Made by a program: the position numbers and the translations under genes. The notes below the pieces were generated by a model. The model was given only the letters and a program-made list of their open reading frames with translations, was not told the DNA's origin and did no database searches. 64,000 nt of DNA from Epithemia pelagica (taxonomy: Eukaryota > Protista > Bacillariophyta): NCBI GenBank assembly GCA_946965045.2, contig OX337240.1, positions 2,976,001-3,040,000 of the forward strand, in the 5' to 3' direction. Numbering within the stretch: position 1 is the stretch's first letter; each line of letters starts with the position of its first letter. Positions 22,536 through 44,559 of the stretch are shown one piece after another.

Positions 22536-23073
22536 TTAGGTATTGTGGTTGTCAGCAATGTCCCAAAGGACCAAACTGAGCAAATGATTCCGCTTCTGAC
22601 CTCCTGGAATCACTTTGGTTGCAATGTCGGCTGGATTGTTCTGCGTTGGGATGTGGGTGGTAAGAATCTCACCCATGGCCACTGATTCGCGAACGGCATG
22701 ATAACAAATCGAATTGGATTTCTTCTTCAGTTGTGATTCGGGTCGTTGGGTGTTGTGGATCACGGACATGTTGTCTCCGTAGACGAGTGATGGTCCACTG
22801 ATTGGCACACCCATCATACGTAGCTTGTATCGTAACCCGCGAATTGCTTCCATACCTGTCTTCAATGCAACGAACTCGGCACCAAACACTGAAGTTTCAA
22901 TCGTCGCTTGTCGCTTTGTGTACCATGCGATTGGGGCCATGTTCAGGAAGATGAAATACCCAGTCCTAGAGCGCCTGACTTGCTTGTCACCGGCATGATC
23001 CGAGTCAACAAACAGTCGCAAGTCCACATCCTTCCCACGCGGCTGAGGCATTTTCGGAGGTATGGCCTCATTA
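22536..23073 (-). pseudogene. pol: Copia RNase H, cut off from RT by the insertion
   Basis: EAIPPKMPQPRGK, FVDSDHAGD, QATIETSVFGAEF, YGDNMSV, NPADIATK. Confidence 0.93.
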
Positions 23074-23419
23074 CGTCTAAGGGCAGCGTCACGCGCCCCC
23101 AAAACGCACACCCCATACGCGCCGTCGGCATGCGCCATTTTTCGTACCCGGTTTTTTTATACGGATTTACACCATTTTGACTAATCCCCCCCCACCATCA
23201 CGCACATACAACATCATACACATTCACGGCGACCCTATCTTCCACGCACGCACACTCCCATCTTCCACGCACAGAGAACTTACCTTCTAAGCACACTGAC
23301 CTTGCCCTCCACGTCCAAAACACTCTGAACACAAAGTACCAACCTCATCGGAACAAGGCATCTATACACCCTCTCCACAGGTGCAATAACACAAGGGCAA
23401 ACCCCCAATCTCTCCTATC

Positions 23420-23630
23420 CCATTCTCCAATGACACCAGCGGAAGCCACTCACCTTTTGCATCCCATGCTCCGAAAGCACCAGCGGAAGCCACACACCAT
23501 TAGCATCCCATGCTCCAAAAGCACTGGCAGAAGCCACCCACCTTTTGCATCTCAGGCACCGAAAGCACCGGCAGAAGCCACCCACCTTTTGCATCTCAGA
23601 CTCCAAAAGCACCAGCAGAAGCCACACACT
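23420..23630. repeat. Imperfect tandem repeats near the left end of the giant element
   Basis: Recurring GCACCAGCGGAAGCCAC and CACCTTTTGCATC units. Confidence 0.7.
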
Positions 23631-23714
23631 TATGGTAACTCATTTCACAACACAATCGATACCATCCACAGAAGAATGTGAAAACATGCACAGAAGCTAA
23701 TGAAGAGATACTAT

Positions 23715-26042: not shown

Positions 26043-26476
26043 GACAAAAAGAGTATACCTGATATAAGAAGTGTTGACAATGCAATGAGTTTTGGGTGCA
26101 ACAAGAGGAGAATGTTATGCCAATCCGTTTTCATTGAGGTCTTACCTTTCGACCATCAAATTTCAAAAGTCGAGCCGTTTGTTCCGAGTACACCCGGTTT
26201 TTTTTGAATTGAACCAAATCGTCAGGCGACAATTATACATTCAAACGACCAATGCCACATGGGCATTTGTGTTCGTTCCGATCCCATGTACCGATAGACT
26301 CATAGTTTATGTAGAATAGTATGGGTGGATGGGCGGGGGGGTGGGGGTAAACCATATCCATCCACAACCAATGAAAAAGCGAGCCGGGCGACCATAAAAT
26401 CGAAACCATTCGTGTCAGTCGTCACATTAGCAATGATTCTCATTCCACAAAGACTAAGGACCACAAAACCAATGCC

Positions 26477-29400
26477 ATGGGCCGTCCTTGTAAACCAAGG
26501 TATTTAAGAAATAAACCTTCCGTCATCAAAGATCAATGGGTAGGCGAAGATCCAAATGCGAGTACAGGTGGTTCCATTCTTCCATGTCGTAAATGTAGAA
26601 ATTGTCATGTATTATTCCACGTCTCCGGGATCTTCCAACATGAAAGGGTTTGTAGCACCAAAAGAGAAAACGGCACTTTGGTCTCACATGCATTGGAGCA
26701 CGAATCGTCAATGATATGCCACGAAACTGCTGGTGTCGAGAACAATACCTCTCATGATAAAGATCAGGGAAATCATTTAGAAAATGGAGGAACCGATGAT
26801 AGTGCTGTAGGGATTTCAGAAAATGGAGGAACCGACAATGGTGCTGTAGGGATTTCCTGGGCGGACGATCGAGAAGATGAGGAAAGAGAGGATCTGCAAC
26901 CCACTACACAAAAACAACCCATCGTGAGACAGCCATGTCGGAATAGTACAAATATTGCTCATTCCTTGCTGTCATCTGAGAATGAGGAAGAATCAGATGA
27001 GGACCAAGAAGAGGGACCACCAGCAGATCATGATGATGGGCTCCAACAAACTGTCGATGACAATGAGGATGTCCAAGGCAAAGGTTCATCCAGTGATGAC
27101 CATGTTATCGATGAAAACTCAAAAGACAATCCTTTGGAATTTCCAGTGTATCTTGAACAAAATGGTCTCCGATTTTCCGAAGATGACAAGGCTTTATTGA
27201 GGTTGGCCATACTCCTCCGGAATGCTGGGTGTCCAAAGTTCATGTTCGATGCCATTTTGGCATGGATTGATTATACTAACGAGTGTTGTGGCTCACGTTT
27301 TTTCAATAAAAAACATCCACGGCGAAAGGGATTCATGGCGAAATTTGAAAAAAGAGGTTTCGATTTCCCCAAACCAAAGATTGTCACCGTCCCAATGGAA
27401 GTTACAACCAAAAAGGATATAATCGTTCCAGACAGTGAGAAGTCCGTTGATACCGTTATATTTGATTTTGTGCATCAACTTCGACGTGTCTTGCAAGATC
27501 CTGAAGCCACTTCCAAGGATAAAACAATATTATGTGATGACGACCCGTATCGCCCTTATACACCGAATAAATGTCTCGAAAACATACAAGATGGCCATGT
27601 TTTCCAACGTACCGTACGGAAATACAGACATGACAACGATACTTTCGTTGTTGGTTTATTGTCTTATATGGATAAGACACACGCGAAAGGGGATGGTCGC
27701 TTTAATGCGGAACCAGTTGTTATGGTACCTTCATTTTTGACGATGTCTGAAATGCGAAAACCGAATAGACAAATCATTTTAGGGTTGATCACAGATATGG
27801 AACGGAAGTCATCTGCGGCCAAATACATCTTGGATAGGGGGTCCCCCTGTCGGAATTATCATGCACAGCTCTCGCGAATACACCAAGCTCTTTTGAAGAT
27901 ACAGAATCGAGGTGGATTGTGGATGCGATTACGGATCCATGGGATCGAGAAGGTGGTGAGATTAGTATTACCTGTGATCATGATAAAGGGAGATGCGAAG
28001 TCACAAGATAACATCGCAGGAAGATATGCATCTCATCATCAAAGTGTTGGCCGGCTTGTTTGGCAGTGTGATTGCACACCTCGGGAGTCTAGATACCCAT
28101 GGTCCACATGCAACTACCTCTTCAAAAACCCTATCCATTTCAGAAGCCTCCGTGTGCTTGGTTTAGATAAACCATCAGGAAACCCAATAGTTATCGATTC
28201 TGGACAACCCGGTATAGATGATCCGAGAGAGGATCCTTGGAGAGAACCTGTGAACAATTCCAAGAAAATTTTACATCAGATTGGACAATACCCAGTGAAC
28301 AACATCTACAACCATTTGTATTTGGGTGAGGGTGTTAATAAAACACATGGGATTTTTACCGCGGCATGTTGTGATGTATTACATACTTTGAAATCGGGGA
28401 TCATGAAATATATCATGACTGATTTCTTTGCTCTGATGACAATGAGAGAAAAAGCCATGTTTGATTTCTTGTACAGCTCTTTCTTCCGAGCCAACCGGCA
28501 GTCGGTATTCTCTTATTCTTCTAGTTGGGGGTACCCCAGAACATCCTTCTCTGCAGGTATCAGTAATGTTACAAAGGTAACAGCCAATGAATGGGTTGGT
28601 ATTATGTTTGTCTCAGCCGCTTTGTGTGTTTCTGTTCGTGGTCATCTTATTTTCGCTTCAACTATGGCGGAGAAATGGAAAAAAGTAGTTGCAGAGTGGA
28701 AACAATGGTGCAAAGAAGAAGAAGAGAGACGAAAGAAAAAGGAAGAAGAGAAAGAACGGAAGAGAAAGAAAAATGAATTAGAAAAAAAAAAGAAAAAACG
28801 ACTACGAATGGGCGCTGGACAAAACAACGTATCCTCTACCAACAATAAACGTCAACGACAATCGAAAAAAAACCCGGTTGTACACCACAGTATTGCTGAT
28901 GCTTCATCCGATTCGGATGAGAATGACTCACCTGTGGATGATAGTAACGAAGAAATAACCACAAATATCAACGACAATCTGCCCGTTCATGTACAGGAAA
29001 ATGAAGATTACCAATATTGTGAACCTGACATTGAGGTACAGGTTACGAGTGAAACAGTATTCGACGATGACCCTGTGGCATATGCATCGATCTGGGATGA
29101 AGGTGAGCGGGAACCATATCTGGATTTCCTCTTCCTGCTTGAGACAATACTCTGTTTCAACAGCTGGACAAGGATGGATAGATTTTGGGATAGCGACCCA
29201 CGTTCTCCTGCCGCGAAGGAAACAGCGCGACGATCAGTTGAATCTGTCAAGATAATGATGGATGGTATACGGCGGTATGCACCACAATTGGATAAAAAAG
29301 GGAAACTGATGTGCAATGGTTGGATGATCCCAAAATACCACAACTTGGTACATATAGTTCGACAGGTGTCCAATTTTGGCCCAGTTAAAATATCCGACAC

Positions 29401-30607
29401 TGAATCAGAGGAGAGTAACCACAAAGAAATTGTCAAACTGAATGCCAAAACAGTACAAAAGCGGGGTAAGGGTGTCTTCGACAGTCAACTTGGTGATAAC
29501 ATATGGCAGATGCAGGCATGGGATCTGCTCTGTAAAGCATCAGGGATCAAACAAGATGACGTGGAGCTACTAAAAAATGGTCAATCTCCAACCATTGTGG
29601 CAAGGAAAAAAAGAAGTCAAGTGTATCATAGTCATGAGAATGATGACGAGGACGATGAAGAAGATAGATGTAAATTCAAGGGGCGAGGGACAACAATACA
29701 AATCCAATTGGTCAGATCTGGACAGACAGAGAGCCCCGTGGTCAAGTGTACTTACAAGTATATTTCGAAAACAAATACCGGTATGATCCTCCCAAAAGTA
29801 ATCCTTGACTTCCTGGTGAAACATGCAAGTGCCATCTTCACACAAATGAATATTATACAACAGAATGACACAAGTGATTACATCATGATCCATGGGTGTA
29901 CAGAGGTCAAATTCAGGGATGAAAACATAGGTGGTATCCGATGTCATCCTAATTACCAAAGTGAGGGTCCTTGGAGAGACTGGGTGAAAGCATGGATCCC
30001 ACGACACCAGCGAACACCATTCACTGACACTGCAACAGGTAATCAGGGAACAGACAATATCTTGGTACTCTGTCAGGTTTTATGCTTCATACGCAGACCA
30101 TGGGAACAACGGGAAAGTGCTGGTCACATGCAAGAACAGGGAAATGATGCTCGTACATCAAGAATCCACCAAGAAAAACCGAGAGATGTCACACATGCTT
30201 TATTACGAACCACTTATCGTCGTAGTGACAAGGATAAAGAGAAGTCCTCCGTCCTTTTCATTCGATGGAGCAAGGCCTTTACCCGGAATTCCCGTGTTCC
30301 CGATCTTGTATTGGTTCCTATCACCAATATAGTTGAATTGGTAGGAGTGATCGATGAAAACCCGGAAATGATCCAACACCGAGATAAGGTACCGGAATAC
30401 CTGCATTCTGATGCGGAAAGAGAAATATTGCTTGAATATACTCGGAATCACAGGAACTATTCCGATATTGTATGGGAGGTACTTCCTGCCAGTAAATGGG
30501 CCAATGAGTTCAATGACTCAGCAAGTGATTCGTTGAGAGCAAGATATACATCATCATCAGATCCTTCACAAACAACAACAACAGATCGTAACACTGCTGG
30601 ATCATGA
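26477..30607 (+). CDS. Plavaka/CMC(EnSpm)-like transposase, 1376 aa
   Basis: YMDKTH, IKGDAKSQD...GRY..H...CDC, CDVLHTLKSGI, PKYHNLVH...FG...DTESEESNHK, C-terminal HP...GPWRDWV; N-terminal C2H-type finger (CRNC...HERVC). Confidence 0.8.
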   Translation: MGRPCKPRYLRNKPSVIKDQWVGEDPNASTGGSILPCRKCRNCHVLFHVSGIFQHERVCSTKRENGTLVSHALEHESSMICHETAGVENNTSHDKDQGNHLENGGTDDSAVGISENGGTDNGAVGISWADDREDEEREDLQPTTQKQPIVRQPCRNSTNIAHSLLSSENEEESDEDQEEGPPADHDDGLQQTVDDNEDVQGKGSSSDDHVIDENSKDNPLEFPVYLEQNGLRFSEDDKALLRLAILLRNAGCPKFMFDAILAWIDYTNECCGSRFFNKKHPRRKGFMAKFEKRGFDFPKPKIVTVPMEVTTKKDIIVPDSEKSVDTVIFDFVHQLRRVLQDPEATSKDKTILCDDDPYRPYTPNKCLENIQDGHVFQRTVRKYRHDNDTFVVGLLSYMDKTHAKGDGRFNAEPVVMVPSFLTMSEMRKPNRQIILGLITDMERKSSAAKYILDRGSPCRNYHAQLSRIHQALLKIQNRGGLWMRLRIHGIEKVVRLVLPVIMIKGDAKSQDNIAGRYASHHQSVGRLVWQCDCTPRESRYPWSTCNYLFKNPIHFRSLRVLGLDKPSGNPIVIDSGQPGIDDPREDPWREPVNNSKKILHQIGQYPVNNIYNHLYLGEGVNKTHGIFTAACCDVLHTLKSGIMKYIMTDFFALMTMREKAMFDFLYSSFFRANRQSVFSYSSSWGYPRTSFSAGISNVTKVTANEWVGIMFVSAALCVSVRGHLIFASTMAEKWKKVVAEWKQWCKEEEERRKKKEEEKERKRKKNELEKKKKKRLRMGAGQNNVSSTNNKRQRQSKKNPVVHHSIADASSDSDENDSPVDDSNEEITTNINDNLPVHVQENEDYQYCEPDIEVQVTSETVFDDDPVAYASIWDEGEREPYLDFLFLLETILCFNSWTRMDRFWDSDPRSPAAKETARRSVESVKIMMDGIRRYAPQLDKKGKLMCNGWMIPKYHNLVHIVRQVSNFGPVKISDTESEESNHKEIVKLNAKTVQKRGKGVFDSQLGDNIWQMQAWDLLCKASGIKQDDVELLKNGQSPTIVARKKRSQVYHSHENDDEDDEEDRCKFKGRGTTIQIQLVRSGQTESPVVKCTYKYISKTNTGMILPKVILDFLVKHASAIFTQMNIIQQNDTSDYIMIHGCTEVKFRDENIGGIRCHPNYQSEGPWRDWVKAWIPRHQRTPFTDTATGNQGTDNILVLCQVLCFIRRPWEQRESAGHMQEQGNDARTSRIHQEKPRDVTHALLRTTYRRSDKDKEKSSVLFIRWSKAFTRNSRVPDLVLVPITNIVELVGVIDENPEMIQHRDKVPEYLHSDAEREILLEYTRNHRNYSDIVWEVLPASKWANEFNDSASDSLRARYTSSSDPSQTTTTDRNTAGS

Positions 30608-31003
30608 AGGTGTCAGTGAAAGTCGTTCTGTATAACCAATAAGGGGGTGGGTGGGGGTGGGGTGGAGGGTGTGTTTCCAACCACCAACAAAGGTCATAGG
30701 GGATGTCCGAGTGGTATCCGTAATATTTATTTCAGAGAAGTGGTCCCAATAATATACTCCCCAACATGTCGGAGTGGTACTCCGTTTATTAAAAAGAGTG
30801 ACACGTGATGAGGGATAGTACGAGATAGATGTCCATGTGGTATCCACAAACGGCAGCCGACCCATTATTCTTCATAAAAAAACAAACACATCTTAGTAGA
30901 AGTCTCGTCTCTTCTTTTTCTTGAATGTGATAGGTTCATTCTGTTTGATCATCAAGTAATCATTTTTACACAAGCGGTGAGATAAAACTCTCTGGCTTAC
31001 GCA

Positions 31004-32275
31004 ATGTTGAGCAATCCATACAAAAAACCACGCACCATGACGAACCCATACAACAAACGCCGAAAACCACAAAGTACCAAACCACAAAACAAGGGGGTAC
31101 TTAGTGAAAGCCGTGGAAACAATCTTCATCCAGAAGAAACCCAGTTCCAAAATGACGGCGACATCACATTTCTCGAGGATTTATTTCAATTGAGAGAAGA
31201 GAAATTCCAGAAAGAGAATAAAGGACATCACAAAAATAACAACAGCAACCACGTCGGCGAATTGGTACCACGAGTAGTAGATGACAGCTCTCCTGAACCA
31301 GGTATATCCGTCGAAGGGCATCACGAGAAAACAGAGCAGCCAAAGAAAACAGAGACTCCTGGTAACGTTGTTGTACCACCATCCATTCCCGATACAACTA
31401 TCGTTCCTCATACTAATCCCAAGAAAACGGTCATTCGCAATCCATATGCGGTCAAAAGCCGTATCATTGACCCCTCTGTGGTCACTGCGAAATTTAAGAC
31501 AATACCATTGGCTCCAGAATCACCAAGTTATTCTGATCGAGTTGGTGACCGAGATGCAGACTTTCACCCTGAAGTGGTTAAGTTCACCAGACTTGCCAAC
31601 GAGGTATTGGGTTCTACAGAGAATATAGCAGATGCCATTTGTCCAGTTTGTTTGTTTCAAGATAACCCAACAACCGATCGGTATTTAACAGGAAAATTCT
31701 GGCATCCTTTTGGTACTACTCACCGGTGCCGTGACCATTGTTACGGTTGTGGGGTACATTGTGATGTATGCGAAACAGGTGGCAATGAATACAAATGCCG
31801 GCAATGCATTTTCGACCACGATGGGAAACTCCATGATAAACTTGTGGATCGCACATGTACTTATATTCCAATCGTATGTAAGGGTTGCCTCCGACCATGC
31901 AATTCAAATGGAGAATGTGTCAGTATTCGGGTCTGTTGGAAGTCCAACAATAAATATTTCATATGGCGTTTCTGTATGATCGTTCGAAGAGCCTTACTCT
32001 TGAATCAATACAGGCCTGACTTGACTTCTGGGGTGGGAGGGATACCCCGATACACACAGGTAGTCATAGTCAAAGCAGTTCAACAGATGTACAAGGACCT
32101 CCGGTACCCCAATGAATCATCACAATTCTCTAGCCCCTTCATACACATGGGAACAGAGGTCGAGTGGACAAAATGGTTGGTATCAACCTGCTTCGGTCCC
32201 TTTTTCAATTACATGGTGTTATTCCGATACTGTTTCCAAGCCATCATGAACCTCAAAGAGAATACCGCGACTTAA
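31004..32275 (+). CDS. Cys-rich hypothetical cargo protein 1
   Basis: 423-aa ORF with CPVC, CYGC, CRQC, CKGC; C-terminal half similar to 35589-36464. Confidence 0.7.
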   Translation: MLSNPYKKPRTMTNPYNKRRKPQSTKPQNKGVLSESRGNNLHPEETQFQNDGDITFLEDLFQLREEKFQKENKGHHKNNNSNHVGELVPRVVDDSSPEPGISVEGHHEKTEQPKKTETPGNVVVPPSIPDTTIVPHTNPKKTVIRNPYAVKSRIIDPSVVTAKFKTIPLAPESPSYSDRVGDRDADFHPEVVKFTRLANEVLGSTENIADAICPVCLFQDNPTTDRYLTGKFWHPFGTTHRCRDHCYGCGVHCDVCETGGNEYKCRQCIFDHDGKLHDKLVDRTCTYIPIVCKGCLRPCNSNGECVSIRVCWKSNNKYFIWRFCMIVRRALLLNQYRPDLTSGVGGIPRYTQVVIVKAVQQMYKDLRYPNESSQFSSPFIHMGTEVEWTKWLVSTCFGPFFNYMVLFRYCFQAIMNLKENTAT

Positions 32276-32281
32276 ATTAAA

Positions 32282-35200
32282 CAGACTTCGACGACCCAAA
32301 CTTCCATGGACATGGAGCAAAAACACCCTTCTATAACTTGAATCGCTCCAAATATTGGTAGAGACACTTGGGGTATCATAGGTATGGACGTCAATGGCTC
32401 TGAACTCGTGTATCACGGACCAAAAGTCTTGTTGTAGACCATACCAGTGTCACATTGTCGATGTCCCAAACTTCCATGGACATGGAGCAAAGACACCCTT
32501 CTATAACTTGAATCGCTCCAAATATTGGTAGAGACACTTGGGGTATCATAGGTATGGATGTCATAGGCTCTGAACTCGTGTATCGCGGACCAAAAGTCTT
32601 GTTGTAGACCATACCAGTGTCGCGTTGTAAATGTACCAAACTTCCATGGACATGGAGCAAAGACACCCTTCTATAACTTGAATCGCTCCAAATATTGGTA
32701 AAGACACTTGGGGTATCATAGGCATGGACGTCATAGGCTCTGAACTCGTCTATCGCGGACCAAAAGTCTTGTTGTAGACCATACCGGTCTTGCGTTGTCG
32801 ATGTCCCAAACTTCCATGGACATGGAGCAAAGACACCCTTCTATAACTTGAATCGCTCCAAATTTCGCTAGAGACACTTGGGGCATCATAGGTATGGATA
32901 TCATAGGCTCTGAACTCGTCTATCACGGACCAAAAGTCTTGTTGTAGACCATACCGGTGTTGTGTTGTCAATGTCCCAAACTTCCATGGACATGGAGCAA
33001 AGACACCCTTCTATAACTTGAATCGCTCGAAATATTGGTAGAGACACTTGGGGTATCATAGGTATGGACGTTAATGGCTCTGAACTCGTGTATCGCGGAC
33101 CAAAAGTCTTGTTGTAGACCATACCAGTGTCGCGTTGTCGATGTCCCAAACTTCCATGGACATGGAGCAAAGACACCCTTCTATAACTTGAATCGCTCCA
33201 AATATTGGTAGAGACACTTGGGGTATCATAGGCATGGACGTCATAGGCTCTGAACTCGTCTATCGCGGACCAAAAGTCTTGTTGTAGACCATACCGGTAT
33301 TGCGTTGTCGTTGTACAAAATTACCATGGACATGGAGCAAAGACACCCTTCTATAACTTGAATCACTCCAAATTTCGGTAGAGGCACTTGGTGTATCATA
33401 GCAATGGACGTCATAGACTCTGAACTCGTGTATCACAGACCAAAAGTCTTGTTGTAGACCATACCAGTGTCGCGTTGTCGATGTCCCAAACTTCCGTGGA
33501 CATGGAGCAAAGACACCCTTCTATAACTTGAATCGCTCCAAATTTCGCTAGAGACACTTGGGGCATCATAGGTATGGATATCATAGGCTCTGAACTCGTC
33601 TATCACGGACCAAAAGTCTTGTTGTAGACCATACCAGTGTCGCGTTGTCGATGTCCCAAACTTCCATGGACATGGAGCAAAGACACCCTTCTATCACTTA
33701 AATCGCTCCAAATATTGATAGAGACACTTGGGGTATCATAGGTATGGATATCATAGGCTCTGAACTCGTCTATCACGGACCAAAAGTCTTGTTGTAGACC
33801 ATATCAGTGTGGCGTTGTCGTTGTACCGAATTACCATGGACATGGAGCAAAGACACCCTTCTATAACTTGAATCACTCCAAATTTCGGTAGAGTCACTTG
33901 GTGTATCATAGCAATGGACGTCATAGGCTCTGAACGCGTGTATCGCAGACCAAAAGTCTTGTTGTAGACCATACCAGTGTCGCGTTGTCGATGTCCCAAA
34001 CTTCCGTGGACATGGAGCAAAGACACCCTTCTATCACTTAAATCGCTCCAATTATTGGTAGAGACACTTGGGGTATCATAGGCATGGATGTCATAGGCTC
34101 TGAACTCGTGTATCACAGACCAAAAGTCTTGTTATAGACCATACCGGTGTCGTGTCGTCGATGTCCCAAACTTCCATGGACATGGAGCAAAGACACCCTT
34201 CTATCACTTAAATCGCTCCAAATATTGGTAGAGACACTTGGGGTATCACAGGCATGGATATCATAGGCTCTGAACTCGTCTATCGCAGACCAACAGTCTT
34301 GTTGTAGACCATACCGGTGACGTGTTGTCGATGTCCCAAACTTCCATGGACATGGAGCAAAGACACCCTTCTATAACTTGAATCGCTCCAAATATTGGTA
34401 AAGACACTTGGGGTATCATAGGCATGGACGTCATAGGCTCTGAACTCGTCTATCGCGGACCAAAAGTCTCGTTGTAGACCATACCAGTGTAGTGTTGTCA
34501 ATGTCCCAAACTTCCATGGACATGGAGCAAAGACACCCTTCTATAACTTGAATCCCTCCAAATTTCGGTAGAGACACTTGGGGTATTATAGGAATGGACG
34601 TCATAGGCTCTGAACGCGTGTACCATGGACCAAAAGTCTTGTAGTAGACCATACTGGTGTGGTGTTGCCGTTGTACCAAACTTCCATAGACATGGAGCAA
34701 AGTCACCCTTCTATAACTTGAATCGCACCAAATTTCAATAGAGACACTTGGGGTATCATAGGAATGGATGTCATAGTCTTTGATCTCGTCTATCACGGAC
34801 CAAAAGTCTCGTTGTAGGCCATACCAGTATCGCGTTTCCGTTGTCTCAACCTTCCATGAGGGGTATGGAGCAACAACACCCTTCTATGACTTGAAGCGCT
34901 CCAAAATTCGGTACAGACACTTGCGGTATCATAGGCATGGACGTCATAGGCGCTGAACTCGTCTATCATTGACGTAAATTATTGTTGTAGACCACACCGG
35001 TGCGGTGTTGTCGTCGTCCCAATCTTCCATAGACTTTTTGGAACAAAGACATTTTTCTTTTCATCTAATCGACCCAGGTCTTGGTACATATCCTCGGGAC
35101 ATCATAGCCATGTGTACCATAGGCTCTGATCTCATGTGCCGTCAAGACAAAGGCTTGCAATAGATTAGATCGGTTTGGTGTTGTCGTCGTGCCAAAATTG

Positions 35201-35450
35201 TATGGACATGGAGCAAAGAGATCCTTCTCTTCATGGAATCGGTCCAGATTTTGGAAGAGACCCATAGTGTCTCATTTTTATGGATACCATAGGATCTGAT
35301 CTCGTGATCTGTGACGAGAAAGGCTTGCAATAGACCATACCGATATAGCGTTGGCCTTGACATCGTCCAAAAATTTCGTACGCTCATTTCATCCTCCATT
35401 GATTCGTATGACAAAGCAAACAAGACTCGGAAATTCTTAGCGTTATTTGA
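32282..35450. repeat. 170-bp tandem satellite, about 16 conserved plus 2-3 degenerate units
   Basis: CTTCCATGGACATGGAGCAA (or a variant) recurs at 32301, 32471, 32641 ... 34851, exactly every 170 bp. Confidence 0.97.
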
Positions 35451-35588
35451 ATTTTTCCCCATAAAAACGATAAGAATTGAGAGATAGTCAGGATCAGTTG
35501 TTTTCTCTGAAGTACATCTTCTTCCAACCGCAAACAGAAATCCTCATACCATTGCTCTTCAAGAAGACCGTTCGATATCGTATAAAAG

Positions 35589-36464
35589 ATGGAAGACTCG
35601 TCTTGGTTGAATACTGTTGCAATATGGAATCTCATCTCGAATACAAGATTTGATGTTGAAACTTCGTTTTGTCTTCGTAGCAGCGATAGGAATGTTGTTC
35701 TCACTGAAGATGTTGCAGCGGCAGCCGAAGGAATCAAAAACGAATTCAAGGATCTTGTAGACAAGATTATTAATCACGAGGGACGACTTGATGTGATTTC
35801 CATTATGAATGGTAATCAAGAGGGATATACAGAAGAGCACCAGTGTCAGATGGGCACATGGGCAGACAGACCGGAATTCCTTGACGGACCCTTCATCTGG
35901 AAACAAAACTTCCTCGAGACATGTCTTGTTTGCGGTAAATTCACCTGTAATCAACGGGCAACAATATACACATGCAAACATTGTTTCCGTCCTTTACAAG
36001 TACCTGGGTCGTCTTCATCTTGTGATACCACTTGTGCAAAGACTCCCTGTACTTCATCCATGAACATGTCCTTCGTATGGGAGTTCTGTATGACTTTAAG
36101 AGAGGCATTCCAAGCGTGGTTAGACTTTCACAAGTTTGGAAAAAACAGAAAGATTCCCTTTTTTGAATATATCCCAGCCGAAACTTGTGGCATCTTGACA
36201 AAAACGGTCGGTAAAGTATGGAGAGAAAAATTGGAGCCTTATTACGACGAGGATACCAAGTGGCGTAGTCCATCTCATTTCATTCACACCGAGAAACAAT
36301 GGGCATTGTGGCTGATTTCTTCACCACCTGGTTGCTCTTTTCGCAACTATATGCCTATTTTTACTGCATGTTATCACATAACACAGGAAAATCCAAAGAA
36401 ACACGCTGCTGGTGTACCACACCAGAGTGCTCGTAAGAAACAAAAGACGTGGAATGCTCCTTGA
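35589..36464 (+). CDS. Cys-rich hypothetical cargo protein 2 (paralogue of 31004-32275)
   Basis: CLVC, CKHC; WEFCMTLR and WALWLISS...FRNYM align with WRFCMIVR and WTKWLVST...FFNYM. Confidence 0.7.
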   Translation: MEDSSWLNTVAIWNLISNTRFDVETSFCLRSSDRNVVLTEDVAAAAEGIKNEFKDLVDKIINHEGRLDVISIMNGNQEGYTEEHQCQMGTWADRPEFLDGPFIWKQNFLETCLVCGKFTCNQRATIYTCKHCFRPLQVPGSSSSCDTTCAKTPCTSSMNMSFVWEFCMTLREAFQAWLDFHKFGKNRKIPFFEYIPAETCGILTKTVGKVWREKLEPYYDEDTKWRSPSHFIHTEKQWALWLISSPPGCSFRNYMPIFTACYHITQENPKKHAAGVPHQSARKKQKTWNAP

Positions 36465-36503
36465 ATTTGTTTTTCCTTGGTGATGAATGCATCCAGAAAG
36501 AAT

Positions 36504-38492
36504 TTATAATGTTCCGCTACGAATGCCTTGAACCGTTTTGGTTATACCATGATCCTCTCTTGTTTCGTTGACAGTTGCATTCATAGACCTGGAACTTACT
36601 GCCCAAAACCAACTAATAGTGTCGTTCTTCATGTTCCCATCTGTATGTTGTCTTTGTGTGTGTATTGACGTTCCATGCCGGATCACACGTCCATCCCATA
36701 GAACCGAAACCCCATGAAATAGTTGTATGCAAAGACCATGGTATGTAGTACCATCATACTCCACAAGAATATTCAGCAAAACAAAGAACCAATTTTGGGA
36801 GTCACCTGGGATTGTCTCTGTCCAGATTGCGAATGAAACAGAACCATCGTGAACATCATAGTGTGTCGTGTTCATGAGGTTCAAACTCAGGGTAATGGCT
36901 GAGGTCATACCTCCGACTCTTCCTCCGAATTCACTAGGCATTTCTTCGCCAGCTGAATCTTCTAGATACCGGAATGTTGGAATCACCCCAGGATATTCGC
37001 GTTCACAGAACCTTTTTGCCGCTGTACTTATTTTCGGCAGTATCATCGATAATGTCTTGTCCTTTGTAAATAATTTCTCGGAAACGAAAGTAGAACCGTT
37101 TCCTCTTGCCGCAGTATTACCAACAGTAGTCATAGATCCTAAGTCTCCCTTATTACATCTGGCATTGGCCGCCTTTCTCAGAGACCCAGTACGTGTAAAT
37201 TCCCTTGCTCTGTGGTGTAATAGGTCCAACAATGTCTGGTCTTTCCGTAACAGGGATGTCACTCGAATGTAACTAAGTGACTCTGGTCTCCCATCATTTC
37301 GGCGTGTCCGAACAATGAAAGTAATGTTTCCCCGAATACGATGGTCGTATACCAGTGGCCTTGGGTGTGTACCGGACGACATTTGCAACCATAGGTTTCG
37401 ATGCAAAGCACCACTAACATATCTCCGACTCCCTTTCTTATCTGAGTCATTCCTGTTTATAATCAGCCTTGTTCGATATTGTTCCCGTGACATGTGATGT
37501 GTCATCGACTGTTTATTCCCTGGCTTTTCGATCTTTCCCTTGTCATCGAGGTACACGTCAGGAGGTAAAAGTGGGCTCCCATCCTCCACATCGGACCATT
37601 GGTAACATTCCTTCACAGTTTTGTCATTATTAGTAAGATGTTCACCCCAATCTAGACTCCAACAACGATGAATTTTTTTCAAGAATGCATTACTTGCAGG
37701 TTGGCCATCTTTGTGTCGCAGACGTAACCAAGACAACGGTAGTGGGACTGATGACGATGTGATGTTGGACGACCTTGATAGTTCTTGAAATTGACGCACA
37801 CATGTATAAAAAACCCCAGCCAAAGGGAAGAGGATAATGATATCTCTGAAGAGGTGATCATTTTGGTCAAGACATAAATTTTTGTTAGTCCGAATCATCA
37901 TGACAGGATCTTCGAATATAGAGGACGACACATGTGTTGTCTTTTTCCTGATTTCTCTATATCTTGTCCTCGACAAGGTACATTCCAATATGAATGCATT
38001 GTGGATCGTTTTAGTTACAAGACCCACCGGGATTTGAGTTACAATCATAGGACAACATTCTGGTATAATGTTCGAATGACTGACAACGTCATCTCTTGTC
38101 TCCACAACATCATCCATAGCCTTGTTGTATATTTCTGGGATACGTGCAAAGACACTCGGGATATCTTTCATATCGACCTTCCGTTGTATCATCTCTTTTT
38201 CGAACGACAAACCAAAACAATCTTGATCGTCGTAACTTCCAAAGCAACGCTGCAGTAGATGCGATAGCATCCTTATTCGATCGATGTCCTTGTCCAAGAC
38301 AAAATAGCACATTCTTTCGTGTGCACTTTCGTTCCGATGCGACATGGCGACTACTGTTTCACTTATACGTTGCGTTTTCTTCTTTTCGTACTTGGCATAG
38401 GTTTCCTGTGTACATGTGAGTCTCGAAATCGTCTGATCCGATGCCATATCTTCGAAAGTGGGACGAATATGTTTCTTCTTTATGGATGTCAC
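36504..38492 (-). CDS. TET/JBP-like Fe(II)-dependent dioxygenase (putative nucleic-acid base modifier)
   Basis: C-terminal DSBH-like region: NTTHYDVHD (HxD, 36855-36863)...IQLFHGVSVLWDG...IRHGTS (distal His, 36675-36677). Confidence 0.7.
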   Translation of the reverse strand: MTSIKKKHIRPTFEDMASDQTISRLTCTQETYAKYEKKKTQRISETVVAMSHRNESAHERMCYFVLDKDIDRIRMLSHLLQRCFGSYDDQDCFGLSFEKEMIQRKVDMKDIPSVFARIPEIYNKAMDDVVETRDDVVSHSNIIPECCPMIVTQIPVGLVTKTIHNAFILECTLSRTRYREIRKKTTHVSSSIFEDPVMMIRTNKNLCLDQNDHLFRDIIILFPLAGVFYTCVRQFQELSRSSNITSSSVPLPLSWLRLRHKDGQPASNAFLKKIHRCWSLDWGEHLTNNDKTVKECYQWSDVEDGSPLLPPDVYLDDKGKIEKPGNKQSMTHHMSREQYRTRLIINRNDSDKKGSRRYVSGALHRNLWLQMSSGTHPRPLVYDHRIRGNITFIVRTRRNDGRPESLSYIRVTSLLRKDQTLLDLLHHRAREFTRTGSLRKAANARCNKGDLGSMTTVGNTAARGNGSTFVSEKLFTKDKTLSMILPKISTAAKRFCEREYPGVIPTFRYLEDSAGEEMPSEFGGRVGGMTSAITLSLNLMNTTHYDVHDGSVSFAIWTETIPGDSQNWFFVLLNILVEYDGTTYHGLCIQLFHGVSVLWDGRVIRHGTSIHTQRQHTDGNMKNDTISWFWAVSSRSMNATVNETREDHGITKTVQGIRSGTL

Positions 38493-38680
38493 CTCCGCTC
38501 TAGGATGTGTGCTTGTCGTTTCCGAACTTCTTGTAGTACAAAGACATAGTTAGTACGCGGATAGAAATGCCAAATACCTGAAACTAGAATGTCTCTTCTT
38601 TTGATCGAGAGTACTAATAATATAGATCAGACTTGCCTTTTCGCTTCTGTGTTACTGATCGTGACAGTAGAAGATTCAGT

Positions 38681-41536
38681 TCAGTCTCTCCTATTCTTCT
38701 CCTTTTGTTGTTTTTTACTCATGAAACGGAGAGTTTCCAACGGTACACGACCCCATGCTGTCTCTGGAAATACAGGGACCGGTCTGTAGAGACCACGATG
38801 TTCCTCTTTTGACACGCCAACTTCTTCAACTGAACCATCATGTGCATTGGTGTACGTAATCGAAGCAATATCTCCGTTGCACAAAGGGCAACTCTCGTTC
38901 ATTTCAGGAGGTGTCGATTTCTGTTTCCCCATAGGAACTTGTTTTTCGGTGGTAAGGACATGACCAAGACACACCCGACAAAACTTGTGCCCGCATCTCT
39001 CGATCCGACAGTCGTTAGGACGCTGTCCATGGCATATGGCACAATATTGTTCGGAGTCTTCATCATATTCGTCTAGGACGATTGTCTTGTCTTTCTTCGC
39101 GATTAATTCTGTCTCATGTAGATCGTGTGGTATTATCTCAGCATGCATATGACCGCATATGGAACAAAATCGATTCTTCACCGAATTCCGGATGAAAGTA
39201 CATGTTGGACAATGATAATGAGGACAGTTGGAGGTTTCTTGCCTTGTCCAACTCACGATAGAAGAGGTCCGACTTCTATCTAGATCCTTTTTAAGCAATG
39301 AAGTCCCACAAGTGGAACAGAGTGCCTCTTTCTGATCTTCATCGTTCAATGTTCGTACCAGATCCAAAAATCGCCGATCTTCGTGAAGTCGTTCGAGCGC
39401 CTTGTCCGCTTCTGTAATCTCTTGTATCACTTTAATGTCCTCGAATCGTTCATCGTCGGAATCCAGCATATCTTCCATTACCTCCCCTCGATCTTTCCCT
39501 TCCATTATAAACCGGCGACTGCGTTTGATCCTTGGACGATTATCGTCATTAACGTCCTTGAAACATACACGCAGAGTCGAATCACGTTTCGCTTTATTGA
39601 TAGCCGTACTCACGATATGATTGCAGGCCTTGTGACATTCTCGCCTACACGATGGCAATTCTTGAGCCCATTTCCCCATCATCTGATCACAGGACATATT
39701 AGGGGACGCCTTTGACAGGATCTCGTCGATCACACATATGATTGATACTTGGGGAAGCGTACACGCACTTGGTGCCACCGGATTCGGATACTTCTTATAA
39801 ATGAATCTCCAGTCACATCCAACGAGCTCTTCCTTTATATCAACGCTCAAGAATGATTGGATTTTCTTTTCGTCGTCCAATAGCCTTAGTTTCCGTAGAC
39901 ATCGAATCACTGTAGGCCTCCACGAGCGAATATCCCTTGTCGATAATGGATCGAATATCAACACTTCTCTTTGGTGTGCTTGTAAGAGGAATAAGACGGG
40001 ATCAAAAGCTTCATACTTGGTAGTGACGACGACCAATGTAGTATCGGAAGATGACGAACTCAAATCCATTGCAGTCGTTGTGTCCATTCTCAGACTATCT
40101 TCGTCGATTTGCTCAAAGCAAACGGACTTGTTGTGCCATTTATGAACCACCAGCACAAGCATCGACCTGAATATGAGGGGAGGGATCCCCTTAAACTCAG
40201 TCGTCTCTTGAGTATTCGTCCGTAGCAAAAGGTTTCGTCTGTACTGGCGATGTGGGACAAAAAGGACGTCCATTTTCCCATTGTCATGTTGTAGAGAACC
40301 ATTCTTGTTGGTACAGCAAGCACAGGTAAAGACAAATCGTAAAACAACTTCATGGATGCTTCCCTTACGTCTAACGGCACTTTCTTTACAGAGATCCCAA
40401 GCTTCATTGATCGCTGACATCGACTGTTTGAGGGACCAGTTAGCCATATGAATCAAACGGTCGTTAGTGAAAGATGCAAGGTCGTCTGATGGACCAGGTT
40501 TATTCTTGAGAGGAGGTGGTTTCTTTGGTATTCCTTTAGGTTTGTCGCTACCGTGGTCAACATGTGATTTACTTTCCAACAGACCCACCTTTGATTGAGA
40601 GGAAGATTTTTTTGTCGTCGCTTGTTTTCCTTTTTGTGGTTTCTTTTTCAATGCAAGAGTATCAAAAATGGAACTCCGATCCTCCTCAGTCCCTGACAGA
40701 GACTGAGATGGTGATTTGCTCTCGTTATTTGAAACAGTGAAAATGGTAGAACTTGTTGCACCATCACATCTACTGTCTGACGCTCGTTTACGGCGTTTCC
40801 TGTCTTGAGATCGTTGTTCATGTCGCCCCTTCTGATACTCCTTCGTCTTTGTAGCGTATTCCCGTTCCATTGTCTGGTAATATGAAATTAGAACCGCCAA
40901 ATTGGAATAGTCGTTCGCGGGATACTTAGCAGCTCTTGGTATGTCAAAATAAGGACGAAACCAGCAATCAGGAAGTGTAAGGGCTAATGCTTTTTCAACA
41001 TCGACTCCTTCCATTTCATAGGAGTCAGATTCCAATACCCGATAGACAGCTGCCATATGTTGAACGCTCCAAACCATTTCTCGGACTGCTATTGTTCTGT
41101 CTTTCCAAAACTTCGATCTATCAGACGTCATGTAGTCCAATATTTTTGCAGCCACGACATTAAGCCGTCTCTCCATCGAATACGAGTTGAGGACAATATC
41201 AGCGAGCATAGGATGGGCTCCAAGAAACACCTTGAGGGATCGAGTAAAGCTTGCGCTCGACTTTGATCTTGTCGTTGACGGGAATTCCTTGTCCCACAGA
41301 CGAAGTGCGTCTCCATATAGAGTTTGTTCGAATAGGTCGATTTCTGGTGAAATAAAACTACCAGCTCCGTCACTCTTGTTTCCCTCTTGTTGTTCTTCAA
41401 TCGTCTCTACAAGTCTCAGTATCTTCGGGAAACAAACAGCAGCATGCGAGGCGATATCACTGAAAATACTTGATCCACAGCGCAAGAGGGATACGAATAT
41501 GGTTTCACCTCTTATGTAGTGGAGAAATCTGTCCAA
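38681..41536 (-). CDS. Large cargo protein with two C-terminal RING-like fingers
   Basis: CSTC...CPHYHCPTC...CSICG and CAIC...CGHKFCRVC...CPLC; basic/Ser-rich linker. Confidence 0.75.
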   Translation of the reverse strand: MDRFLHYIRGETIFVSLLRCGSSIFSDIASHAAVCFPKILRLVETIEEQQEGNKSDGAGSFISPEIDLFEQTLYGDALRLWDKEFPSTTRSKSSASFTRSLKVFLGAHPMLADIVLNSYSMERRLNVVAAKILDYMTSDRSKFWKDRTIAVREMVWSVQHMAAVYRVLESDSYEMEGVDVEKALALTLPDCWFRPYFDIPRAAKYPANDYSNLAVLISYYQTMEREYATKTKEYQKGRHEQRSQDRKRRKRASDSRCDGATSSTIFTVSNNESKSPSQSLSGTEEDRSSIFDTLALKKKPQKGKQATTKKSSSQSKVGLLESKSHVDHGSDKPKGIPKKPPPLKNKPGPSDDLASFTNDRLIHMANWSLKQSMSAINEAWDLCKESAVRRKGSIHEVVLRFVFTCACCTNKNGSLQHDNGKMDVLFVPHRQYRRNLLLRTNTQETTEFKGIPPLIFRSMLVLVVHKWHNKSVCFEQIDEDSLRMDTTTAMDLSSSSSDTTLVVVTTKYEAFDPVLFLLQAHQREVLIFDPLSTRDIRSWRPTVIRCLRKLRLLDDEKKIQSFLSVDIKEELVGCDWRFIYKKYPNPVAPSACTLPQVSIICVIDEILSKASPNMSCDQMMGKWAQELPSCRRECHKACNHIVSTAINKAKRDSTLRVCFKDVNDDNRPRIKRSRRFIMEGKDRGEVMEDMLDSDDERFEDIKVIQEITEADKALERLHEDRRFLDLVRTLNDEDQKEALCSTCGTSLLKKDLDRSRTSSIVSWTRQETSNCPHYHCPTCTFIRNSVKNRFCSICGHMHAEIIPHDLHETELIAKKDKTIVLDEYDEDSEQYCAICHGQRPNDCRIERCGHKFCRVCLGHVLTTEKQVPMGKQKSTPPEMNESCPLCNGDIASITYTNAHDGSVEEVGVSKEEHRGLYRPVPVFPETAWGRVPLETLRFMSKKQQKEKNRRD

Positions 41537-41759
41537 TTATCAGTGTTGGAATAAACAGAACGATACCACTCGATTGTATATTCATAACATATCAAGTCTG
41601 GGAAATATCGATCGGAATCTTCTACCGAATCAGCCATATTAACGTGCGATTCAATCAGCTTGAGGAAGAAACGAGGAGAAATTTTCTTTCGATGCAGGGT
41701 TCCGATGCAACTTGATACTACCGTTTCTCAAGCTTGCGTGATGGAAACCCTGGAGGGTC

Positions 41760-43170
41760 TTGGTCGATAGGGATGGAGGAGTGAGGGATATGGGTGTACC
41801 AACTTGATGTCTCGGTCCTTCCAGTCAAGAATCAGTAGCAAATACAACAATCCAATAGGGTCTTGGTCGATAGAGATAGAAGATAGAAGTATGGGGGCAC
41901 AACAACTTGGTGTCTCGGCCCTTCAACAGAACCACCAATCAAGATATAGCAATCCAATGGGGTCTTCTTGGTCGATGTAGATGAAGGAGGGATGGAGAGG
42001 GGTGCACCAACTTGGTGTCTCGGCCCTTGTTCCAATAGGGAAGGAGTAGCAACACAGCAATCCAACAAGGTCTTGGTCGATGGTGATGGAGGAGTGAAAA
42101 TTGGGTGCACCAACTTGGTGTCTTGATCCTTGTTCCAATCGAGAAGGAGTAGCAACACAGCAATCCAACAGGGTCTTGGTCGATGGAAATGGAGGGGTGA
42201 AGGAAATGGGTGCACCAACTTGGTGTCTCGGCCCTTATTTCAATCGGGAAGGAGTAGTAACACGGCAATCCAACACGGTCTTGGTCGATGGAGATGGAGG
42301 GGTGAAGGAAATGGGTGCACCAACTTGGTGTCTCAGCCCTTGTTCCAATCGGGAAGGAGTAGCAACACGGCAATCCAACACGGTCTTGGTCGATGGAGAT
42401 GGAGGGGTGAAGGAAATGGGTGCACCAACTTGGTGTCTCAGCCCTTGTTCCAATCGGGAAGGAGTAGCAACACAGCAATCCAACGGGGTCTTGGTCGATG
42501 GAAATGGAGGGGTGAAGGAAATGGGTGCACCAACTTGGTGTCTCAGCCCTTGTTCCAATCAAGAAGGAGTAGCAACACAGCAATCCAACGGGGTCTTGGT
42601 CGATGGAAATGGAGGGGTGAAGGAAATGGGTGCACCAACTTGGTGTCTCAGCCCTTGTTCCAATCGGGAAGGAGTAGCAACACAGCAATCCAATAGGGTC
42701 TTGGTTGATGGAAATGGAGGGGTGAGGGAAATGGGTGCACCAACTTGGTGTCTCGGCCCTTGTTCCAATTGAGAAGGAGTAGCAACACAGCAATCCAACA
42801 GGGTCTTGGTCGATGGAGATGGAGGGGTGAAGGAAGAGGGTGCACCAACTTGGTGTCTCAGCCCTTGTTCCAATCGGGAATGAGTAGCAACACAGCAATC
42901 CAACAGGGTCTTGGTTGATGGAAATGGAGGGGTGAAGGAAATGGGTGCACCAACTTGGTGTCTTGGCCCTTGTTCCAATCAAGAAGGAGTAGCAACACAG
43001 CAATCCAACAGGGTCTTGGTCGATGGAAATGGAGGGGTGAAGGAAATGGGTGCACCAACTTGGTGTCTCAGCCCTTGTTCCAATCAAGAAGGAGTAGCAA
43101 CACAGCAATCCAACGGGGTCTTGGTCGATGGAAATGGAGGGGTGAAGGAAATGGGTGCACCAACTTGGTG
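41760..43170. repeat. 105-bp tandem array, about 14 units
   Basis: TGCACCAACTTGGTGTCT recurs at 42211, 42316, 42421 ... 43156; degenerate units from about 41790. Confidence 0.97.
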
Positions 43171-43172
43171 TC

Positions 43173-43908
43173 TTTTGCCCTTTGTTCAATAGAATCCTCA
43201 CCAATCCGACCGTTCAGATCGTTGAAAATGGTCTTCTGGGATAATAGGAGGGAAGAAGCAGCGGCAATCCAGCAATCCAACCAGTTTTGGTCGATGGAAA
43301 TTGATGGGAGAATGAAATGGGTGCACCAACTTGGTGTCTTCGCCCTTTTTCAAACAGAACCACCAATCCAGTCGTTCAGAGCGTTGAAAATTGTCTTGTG
43401 GGATGATAGGAGGGAAGAAATAGTTGCCAAACAGCGATCACATGGTTGGGTTTTCATGGAAACAGAAGAAAATGATTAGTGGGCATATAGGAAAACGACA
43501 AAACGAACTCTCACTGTTGTCTTGTCGACTTGGCTTACCTTTTTGCCCTTTGTTCAATAGAATCCTCACCAATCCGACCGTTCAGATCGTTGAAAATGGT
43601 CTTCTGGGATAATAGGAGGGAAGAAGCAGCGGCAATCCAGCAATCCAACCAGTTTTGGTCGATGGAAATTGATGGGAGAATGAAATGGGTGCACCAACTT
43701 GGTGTCTTCGCCCTTTTTCAAACAGAACCACCAATCCAGTCGTTCAGAGCGTTGAAAATTGTCTTGTGGGATGATAGGAGGGAAGAAATAGTTGCCAAAC
43801 AGCGATCACATGGTTGGGTTTTCATGGAAACAGAAGAAAATGATTAGTGGGCATATAGGAAAACGACAAAACGAACTCTCACTGTTGTCTTGTCGACTTG
43901 GCTTACCT
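43173..43908. repeat. Exact 368-bp tandem duplication
   Basis: 43173-43540 matches 43541-43908 by eye. Confidence 0.9.
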
Positions 43909-43964
43909 AGCACCTTTCCAATTTGAAAAAGGAAATGATTCTCTTTGTGTTCGCCTGTTTGTTG

Positions 43965-44030
43965 TAGCTGTTGTTGTTGTTGTTGCTGTTGTGTTGTTGT
44001 TGTTGTTGTTGTTGTTGTTGCTGCTGCTGT
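43965..44030. repeat. (GTT)n/(GCT)n microsatellite
   Basis: Runs of TGT/TGC triplets. Confidence 0.9.
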
Positions 44031-44328
44031 GTGTTTTTTGGGGCGTTGGGGGTTGGTGTGAGTTGGATGAGGCACTCTATGACACTATCGTCAAAAAGTG
44101 ATCACAAAAGTGGGAGAGTATATCTTTTGTGTGGTTGTTGTGTGAGGAAAATCTAATTTTCAGCGTTCTTCTGTGATTTTGTGTCCATTGTTCTTCGTAT
44201 GTCACTGTGACGTGATTTGGTGGTGGAGGAGAAATTTGTGGGTCGCTTTTGGAGTTTACGTGCGACTGGAATACTAGGTGTTATATGTGTAGCTAGTAGC
44301 TAGGTATCTAGGCAAAGGTTAGGCTCTG

Positions 44329-44512
44329 TGCACGCGATTCCACATACAATAAACATGCTCACGCGGGTGTCAACACGTTTCACGCGTTGTCTACACGTTT
44401 CACGCGCATTCACGCGCAATCTGGAGCGCCACGCGCTTCGTACGCGCCAAATGCGCGTGATCCGTGTTCTGGGGGTGCTGCACGCGCCTATTGGGCGTGT
44501 GTCACGCGCCTG
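44329..44512. repeat. Subterminal CACGCG motif cluster of the giant element
   Basis: About 9 CACGCG/CGCGTG motifs in about 180 bp; also TCACGCGCC at about 23089 near the left TIR. Confidence 0.8.
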
Positions 44513-44559
44513 TTGGTGGAATTCCAGTCACTTATCTTCAAAAAACCTCCTTAGACGTA

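Follow-up and report, generated by a model that had tools for sequence, protein, structure and literature searches.

A predicted TET/JBP-fold dioxygenase without the last-strand arginine of known TET enzymes is carried by a 21.5-kb DNA transposon of the diatom Epithemia pelagica

The locus

We analyzed a stretch of 64,000 nt from the genome of the diatom Epithemia pelagica (assembly GCA_946965045.2, contig OX337240.1, positions 2,976,001 to 3,040,000 of the forward strand), hereafter the window, to which coordinates refer unless another sequence is named. Loci L004 and L005 match the window at 100% identity, which identifies it as contig ctg1347l of ENA assembly ERZ21939226. The window contains a DNA transposon of around 21.5 kb, inserted in the pol open reading frame (ORF) of a Copia-type retrotransposon, and the minus strand of this element carries, at 36504-38492, a TET-like gene that is the subject of this work (Table 1). 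Its predicted product belongs to a large family of proteins that have lost the last-strand Arg with which TET enzymes hold 2-oxoglutarate (2OG). Diatoms are organisms of great ecological weight, and 5-methylcytosine (5mC) marks their transposons.

The TET-like ORF is present as an open frame of 662 amino acids (aa) counted from a GTG codon, the numbering used here for its residues. The GTG was chosen only because the ORF listing applied the bacterial code, and translation probably begins at the first ATG, at 38447, to produce a protein of 647 aa, the same form as the gene call of the source assembly.

Table 1. Features of the TET-like gene and of the element that carries it. Positions are those of the window; PDB, Protein Data Bank; pN/pS, ratio of non-synonymous to synonymous polymorphism; alignment A2 and the numbered copies (L001 to L011) are referred to in the text.
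Feature	Position	Strand	Evidence and remarks
Predicted TET-fold dioxygenase ORF	36504..38492	-	AlphaFold model, PDB fold matches, pN/pS 0.12 among five copies
Core of the double-stranded beta-helix (aa 532-630; strands I-VIII of the model)	36603..36899	-	Secondary structure of the model; best-conserved stretch in 567 relatives
Iron-binding HxD, H544-Y545-D546	36855..36863	-	H 97/98, D 97/98 (alignment A2)
D549, His+5	36846..36848	-	96/98; mapped by spacing only
W557, His+13, strand III	36822..36824	-	W 85/97, aromatic 94/97
H606, distal iron-binding His, motif W-D-G-R-x-I-R-H-(C/G)-T-S	36675..36677	-	H 93/95, R602 81/94, R605 85/95
Last strand N623-S633 without Arg	36594..36626	-	Family N-(H)-V-(Y/F)-G-x-F-(F/W)-A-A; Arg+Lys at most 5/93 per column 623-632
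R445, candidate for the N-terminal Arg of TETs	37158..37160	-	R 89/92; CMD1-like spacing
Whole element, ~21.5 kb, inside Copia pol ORF	23073..44558		Shared ends of copies and flank comparison
Left terminal inverted repeat	23073..23082	+	L007, L008 and L011 start matching here, flanks unrelated
Right terminal inverted repeat	44549..44558	+	L001 and L006 stop matching at 44557/44558, flanks unrelated
Three ORFs of 213, 204 and 305 aa, left end of element	23715..26042	-	Present in L007 and L008; too few inter-copy differences to judge selection
1376-aa ORF, putative transposase	26477..30607	+	Shares contigs with the TET-like gene in at least 12 cases; pN/pS 0.25
423-aa ORF, conserved in element	31004..32275	+	In L002 at 36% identity, same order; pN/pS 0.34
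Tandem array, 170-bp unit, ~16 copies	32288..35034		Copy number varies among element copies
291-aa ORF, convergent with the TET-like gene	35589..36464	+	The 423-aa ORF is paralogous to it in its C-terminal part; weak zinc-finger match
951-aa RING-finger ORF, directly upstream of the TET-like gene	38681..41536	-	C3HC4 RING at aa 831-891
Tandem array, 105-bp unit, ~13.6 copies	41754..43173		Repeat analysis

Relatives and predicted fold

Analyzed alone, the TET-like ORF gave no match among PDB sequences or in Pfam at expectation (E) values up to 1, staying below the thresholds of both PF12851 (Tet_JBP) and PF20515. A word-indexed protein search retrieved three relatives only, all of them from the same assembly as the window. 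With an exhaustive HMMER search (E up to 0.001) the family grew to at least 567 representatives of clusters, none of them annotated, of which 318 have E up to 1e-10; their conserved core spans aa 440-640. All the named relatives come from Fragilaria crotonensis, and two metagenomic ones (P0124 and P0110) consist of DEAD/Helicase_C domains fused to a TET-like domain.

We aligned aa 150-662 of the query with 97 relatives of 21-46% identity (98 sequences; alignment A2). The iron ligands H544, D546 and H606 are near-invariant across the aligned sequences, and the HxD...H motifs are therefore not a product of chance. Other near-invariant positions are R445, D549, W557 and R605 (Table 1), together with W568 (94/97), G594 (95/96) and G601 (94/95). 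A Pfam scan of the 98 members produced a single weak match, to PF20515 (Tet-like; E 0.0014), and a helicase-fused relative matched the same entry at E 2.6e-4, both of them below threshold. Likewise, profiles of the 98 relatives and of 40 short core-only relatives found no TET among PDB sequences; their sole matches there, to 2S albumins, were taken as chance.

With A2 as input, AlphaFold modelled aa 150-662 as a confident single unit (predicted local distance difference test, pLDDT, 90.6; predicted template-modelling score, pTM, 0.92), and a single-sequence run on aa 430-662 gave no usable model (pLDDT 38.7). In a PDB fold search with the former model, ranks 1 to 24 were all occupied by TET2, CMD1, CcTet or NgTET1 (E 9e-11 to 3e-6), with best E values of 8.8e-11 for human TET2, 2e-9 for CMD1, 1.5e-7 for CcTet and 2e-6 for NgTET1; for the latter, normalisation by target length gave a template-modelling (TM) score of 0.55. 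Matches to FTO and AlkB began at E 6e-6, below every TET structure, and an AlkB/FTO or prolyl-hydroxylase identity was rejected. The named top matches of the model in a library of viral models were JBP1/TET oxygenase domains. Judging from the model, the ORF product is thus very probably a TET/JBP-fold, Fe(II)-dependent nucleic-acid base dioxygenase that lies beyond the reach of sequence profiles.

An earlier note on this DNA, made from the letters alone, had already proposed a TET/JBP-like dioxygenase lacking the usual 2OG-binding Arg, and had named a structural match to another 2OG-dependent family as what would speak against it; the fold search instead placed the TETs first. Of the motifs on which it relied, HYD at 36855-36863 is exactly H544-Y545-D546, the distal His in IRHGTS is H606, and the last strand NDTISWFWAVS reads as quoted from N623 to S633, with a lack of Arg that holds for the whole family as well. 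A small slip concerns the strand given as G-x-x-x-W-D-G, whose spacing is G-x4-W-D-G (the window copy reads H-G-V-S-V-L-W-D-G-R-V-I-R-H-G-T-S here). The note also left out R635, which stands two residues past the quoted strand, where the C-terminal helix begins in the model.

The last strand and the 2-oxoglutarate arginine

The four solved TETs share in their last strand the motif R-x5-[F/Y]-x-[H/R] (TET2 R1896/Y1902/H1904; NgTET1 R289/F295/H297; CMD1 R410/F416/R418; CcTet R385/F391/R393), the Arg of which grips the distal carboxylate of 2OG while the aromatic residue stacks under the flipped base (PMC7854593; PMC11040006). In our model the last strand comprises aa 625-630, and the family equivalent of this motif is N623-x5-F629-x-A631. 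Besides the scarcity of basic residues in columns 623 to 632 (Table 1), no column from H606 to position 632 exceeded 18% Arg+Lys in two independent alignments. As aligned, the Arg position is non-basic in any of the three possible registers, and the canonical Arg is missing from the family as a whole.

Basic residues recur just beyond the last strand, with R/K at position 635 in 54/91 sequences and K633 in 32/94. In CMD1, the DNA contacts Arg418 and Lys420 also follow the last strand (PMC7854593), and given their place a contact with DNA is the likelier role for R635 and K633.

CMD1 Arg410 is kept in sequence but turned from the pocket, and Trp358 takes its place and clashes with 2OG (PMC7854593). 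The parallel that the earlier note drew with CMD1 needs one correction, since CMD1 still has its Arg. The TET-like family exceeds CMD1 in this respect, with the Arg gone altogether and, in addition, a Trp (W557) at the spacing of Trp358. Because the Arg is absent family-wide and a near-invariant Trp lies at the place of CMD1 Trp358, 2OG is probably not bound in the canonical way.

Predicted pocket residues

The spacing around HxD is common to TET2, CcTet and CMD1, in which Phe1377, Arg321 and Gln340, respectively, are all found at His-5 (PMC7854593; PMC11040006). On this basis, counterparts of several functional residues could be proposed for the TET-like protein (Table 2). The position His+13 is occupied by Trp358 in CMD1, Leu339 in CcTet and Val in TET2 (PMC7854593; PMC11040006), and W557, which matches it in spacing, is on a strand in the model. 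The N4 of 5mC is bound by TET2 Asn1387, NgTET1 Asp234 and CMD1 Asp350 (PMC7854593). D549 stands at the spacing of the Asp with which NgTET1 and CMD1 read cytosine N4. For this reason 5mC is the most likely substrate, with cytosine favoured over thymine; we give about even odds to 5mC in DNA. In TETs an N-terminal Arg (TET2 R1261, NgTET1 R224, CMD1 R244) holds the proximal carboxylate and also packs against the base (PMC7854593), and R445 is a candidate for its equivalent.

The ascorbate contacts of CMD1 are His249, Ser335, Thr337, Thr399 and Ser414, two of which find by spacing a fitting residue in the family, S536 and T608. The mapped residues point to a co-substrate pocket that is polar and aromatic and has no basic residue as anchor, a trait that brings it nearer to CMD1 than to TETs that use 2OG. 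That the co-substrate is a non-canonical one is a tentative proposal, to which we give somewhat less than even weight.

Table 2. Residues of the predicted pocket and their proposed counterparts in solved TETs. His, first iron-binding His (H544); 6mA, N6-methyladenine.
Residue	Place	Conservation	Counterpart
S536	His-8	Ser/Thr 98/98	CMD1 Thr337, essential for ascorbate binding
N541	His-3	94/98	CcTet Thr323
D549	His+5	96/98	TET2 Asn1387, NgTET1 Asp234, CMD1 Asp350; Gly331 in 6mA-accepting CcTet
W557	His+13	85/97	CMD1 Trp358
F570	His+26	85/98	CMD1 Phe371
T608	Distal His+2	84/95	CMD1 Thr399; Thr in TET2 too
R445	99 residues before first His	89/92	CMD1 Arg244, 101 residues before first His
D450	R445+5	Conserved in family consensus	CMD1 His249 position, unmatched

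Organization of the 21.5-kb element

The inverted ends of the element share a perfect core of 9 bp (23074-23082 and 44549-44557), and the base beside this core co-varies between the ends, being A...T in the window copy and G...C in another. The flanks differ from copy to copy and include Copia sequences, Kelch genes and others. Clusters at 90% identity or more contain at least 23 TET-like sequences and 26 sequences from the 1376-aa ORF, and the two sets share a dozen contigs. The TET-like gene is therefore cargo of a multi-copy DNA transposon with shared inverted ends. In the window, the element is flanked by two pol pieces (44580-45479 and 22536-23138) that, in separate comparisons with the Copia of L003, prove to be adjoining parts of one pol; the retrotransposon that hosts the insertion is of Copia type (RVT_2) and occupies 22536-23138 and 44580-47053.

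We consider the 1376-aa ORF a putative transposase from its linkage to the TET-like gene, both within and across genera. In Fragilaria crotonensis, one TET-like gene is convergent with a relative of this ORF (24-30% identity), and another (L009:5890-9729) adjoins a gene for a 1279-aa DEAD-box helicase. By eye, the ORF shows a pattern (D...D...CxC...H-x3-H...E) reminiscent of CACTA/Plavaka-type DDE enzymes, a likeness that we do not claim.

Parts of this organization are also found in paralogous loci. In L002 (37-50% protein identity), the RING and TET-like genes are followed by the 423-aa and 1376-aa ORFs, convergent with them, so that the order is kept, and L003, a divergent paralog, keeps the RING gene followed by the TET-like gene. 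The TET-like paralogs of L002 and L003 each continue once in a second frame, which may reflect a frameshift or an intron. A further paralogue, with 33% identity to aa 246-633, lies at L001:1-1095, separated by around 3.2 kb from the end of the element copy of that locus and outside it; different TET-like subfamilies can thus sit side by side.

Among the remaining sequences of the element there are further tandem arrays at 43173-43908 and 23417-23629, so that the array units measure 170, 105, 368 and 44 bp. A 421-aa ORF at 41939-43204 is a reading of the 105-bp array and is probably no gene. No recognisable domain was found in the 423-aa and 291-aa ORFs beyond the weak zinc-finger match. Outside the element, ORFs with RVT_1, RNase H and rve domains to its left (15964-19246) belong to a Gypsy-type retrotransposon, and the host itself seems to be the source of two HMG-box genes (2944-4371 and 61725-62900) and of a gene for a RabGAP-TBC protein (7869-10745).

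Selection and CpG decay among copies

The coding sequence of the TET-like gene was compared among five copies, which differ at 29 synonymous versus 12 non-synonymous distinct variable sites (pN/pS 0.12), with one stop codon in one copy. The ratios for the other ORFs of the element were 0.25 (1376-aa), 0.34 (423-aa), 0.38 (291-aa) and, calculated pairwise, around 0.39 (RING), which makes the dioxygenase gene the most constrained of the element. Among the 15 cluster members listed, full length (647 or 662 aa) is reached by six, and the other nine fall short of it.

Comparison of window positions 23073-32280 and 35400-41700 with copies L001, L006, L007 and L008 revealed transitions at 2.3-5.1% of CpG sites, versus 0.3-0.8% elsewhere, which represents a 6-11-fold excess. 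This excess is the usual footprint of 5mC deamination and indicates that the element has been methylated at CpG. The observed/expected ratio of CpG within the element is 0.65-0.99.

Interpretation and alternatives

Our best explanation is that the TET-like gene encodes an Fe(II)-dependent base dioxygenase serving as an accessory gene of the 21.5-kb transposon, together with the RING gene, the putative transposase and two further conserved ORFs. The enzyme would act, most likely, on 5mC flipped out of DNA, and its role would be to change or strip the CpG methylation of the element, and perhaps that of other sequences too, for the benefit of the element. A counter-silencing role is what we infer, on circumstantial grounds, from the multi-copy transposon setting, the purifying selection and the CpG hypermutability. 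As to chemistry, the leading specific model would be that the enzyme takes ascorbate, as CMD1 does, or some other small molecule as co-substrate. Taken as a whole, a transposon-carried TET/JBP-fold dioxygenase with 5mC as likely substrate, a non-canonical co-substrate pocket and a benefit to the element is a proposal that we hold to be right with about even probability. A bolder version, which we consider unlikely, is that this diatom family abandoned 2OG and turns 5mC into an undescribed base, or one resembling 5-glyceryl-methylcytosine, by means of ascorbate or another co-substrate, and that giant transposons deploy it with a RING ligase against CpG silencing.

Several observations weigh against this explanation. 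The residue mapping to CMD1, TET2 and CcTet was done through spacing from the iron ligands and the strand order of the model, and the best fold match is TET2, not CMD1. The pockets of CMD1 and of the TET-like family are not identical, because only CMD1 keeps the last-strand Arg in sequence; additionally, the family has D450, and no His, at the spacing of the ascorbate contact His249. Basic or His residues that could reach the pocket and hold 2OG are found at R602, R605, R356 and R257, which are near-invariant, and at the weaker candidates K/R590, H593 and H624. With respect to the element, there was no consistent direct repeat of the kind expected of a target-site duplication in the two copies with both junctions known, and the 1376-aa ORF found no match to a transposase class in Pfam (E up to 10), in the PDB, with a four-sequence profile or in a Pfam scan of its relatives. 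Finally, although its frame is intact, the window copy differs from the others by a single private substitution, which falls on a near-invariant position of the core, and it may be impaired.

The alternative that best survives, which we see as rather unlikely, is an ordinary 2OG-dependent TET that oxidizes 5mC to 5-hydroxymethyl-, 5-formyl- and 5-carboxylcytosine (5hmC, 5fC and 5caC), the distal carboxylate being held by R602, R605, K/R590, H593, H624 or an N-terminal Arg. It would agree with TET2 as the best fold match, with the Thr at distal His+2 that is common to TET2, with the several near-invariant Arg outside the last strand and with the weak, sub-threshold matches of two relatives to PF20515; there is also a precedent in CcTet, where an extra Arg (Arg321) joins in 2OG binding (PMC11040006). 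However, several of these anchors meet difficulties. From the general topology of the barrel, R602 and R605, just before the distal His, would be expected at its open substrate end and not at its base; position 590 is basic in 65% of the family but is Gln in the window copy; and position 624 is His in half of the family but Asp, which would repel the carboxylate, in the subfamily of the window copy. Likewise, a bulky Trp fills His+13, where 2OG users have Leu or Val.

It is quite improbable, in our view, that the same fold acts on another substrate, be it thymine, in a JBP-like conversion to 5-hydroxymethyluracil (5hmU), 6mA as in CcTet, or RNA. TET/JBP enzymes reportedly act on thymine in kinetoplastids and dinoflagellates (PMC11572971), and CcTet acts on 6mA (PMC11040006); the relatives fused to, or beside, DEAD/DEAH helicases could also hint at transactions with RNA or other nucleic acids. 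The Asp at His+5, present in 96/98 sequences, argues against the first two, because such an Asp disfavours thymine O4 according to the CMD1 structure paper (PMC7854593) and 6mA fits into CcTet only thanks to a Gly at this place (PMC11040006), and the CpG hypermutability shows that the element carries 5mC.

A catalytically dead protein, be it a structural or DNA-binding remnant or a decaying passenger, is very improbable. In its favour, roughly one in two of the copies listed at 90% identity or more falls short of full length, a stop interrupts one of the five that were compared and the window copy has its private change in the core, but the iron triad is kept in 95-99% of the 98 aligned relatives, down to 23% identity, and the pN/pS of the gene is the lowest in the element. 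We deem it just as improbable that these are host genes sitting in repeated DNA, as the many relatives on short contigs and the helicase neighbour of the Fragilaria gene in L009 might suggest, given that every copy examined in this genome lies within the same 21.5-kb unit, with sharp common inverted ends and unrelated flanks.

Comparison with known systems

The closest parallel to the preferred reading, that of a transposon-borne 5mC dioxygenase with a non-canonical pocket, is the 5mC glyceryl-transferring enzyme CMD1 of Chlamydomonas reinhardtii (PDB 7CY4-7CY8), which has the same TET fold. By spacing, both have in common HxD...H, Asp at His+5, Trp at His+13, Ser/Thr at His-8, Phe at His+26, Thr at distal His+2 and an Arg around 100 residues before HxD. 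In contrast to CMD1, the diatom family has neither the last-strand Arg nor a counterpart of His249, shows no detectable sequence similarity to it and consists of larger proteins that are transposon-borne and encoded beside a RING protein gene. With human TET2, NgTET1 (Naegleria) and CcTet (Coprinopsis), also among its best fold matches, it has in common the iron triad and the residue that reads cytosine N4, but it differs from them in having N-x5-F-x-A in place of R-x5-[F/Y]-x-[H/R] and Trp in place of Val/Leu in the 2OG pocket.

As to the mobile setting, TET/JBP-carrying DNA transposons of fungi were reportedly described by Iyer et al. in 2014. Fungal TET/JBP genes sit in DNA transposons of several superfamilies, and their PE type is visible only by structure comparison (Kojima 2025, PMC12730594). 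The element described here is similar to them in that a TET-fold gene, detectable like the PE type through structure only, is part of a multi-copy DNA transposon with inverted ends; it differs in its diatom host, its far larger size and its several accessory ORFs and long tandem arrays, and the PE type has HxE in place of the HxD seen here. In red algae, giant Plavaka transposons of 17-19 kb carry accessory genes, including a 2OG-oxygenase-like one, beside tandem arrays (bioRxiv 10.1101/2025.02.11.637652). They share with our element the large size, the presence of several accessory genes, an oxygenase and the arrays; nevertheless, their oxygenase was likened to PDB 2OPW and not to TET, it is accompanied by a methylase/SET protein and a ParB-like domain instead of a RING protein, and the termini of the 21.5-kb element are not of the CACTA type. 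In the literature, of which our coverage was incomplete and is no proof of absence, we found no report of TET/JBP enzymes in diatoms or stramenopiles, nor of TET-carrying transposons in diatoms.

TET-carrying transposons were thus already known, and what is new here is an unannotated family that, as aligned, lacks the 2OG-binding Arg and resembles CMD1 at one key position of the pocket. To our knowledge, use of ascorbate as co-substrate and addition of carbon to 5mC have so far been demonstrated for no TET homologue other than CMD1. Another, much larger family that is Arg-less, with a Trp at the spacing of CMD1 Trp358, would be a natural place in which to seek new DNA bases. Likewise, the element takes the pairing of a transposon with a putative methylation-editing enzyme beyond fungi, and adds to it a constant RING partner.

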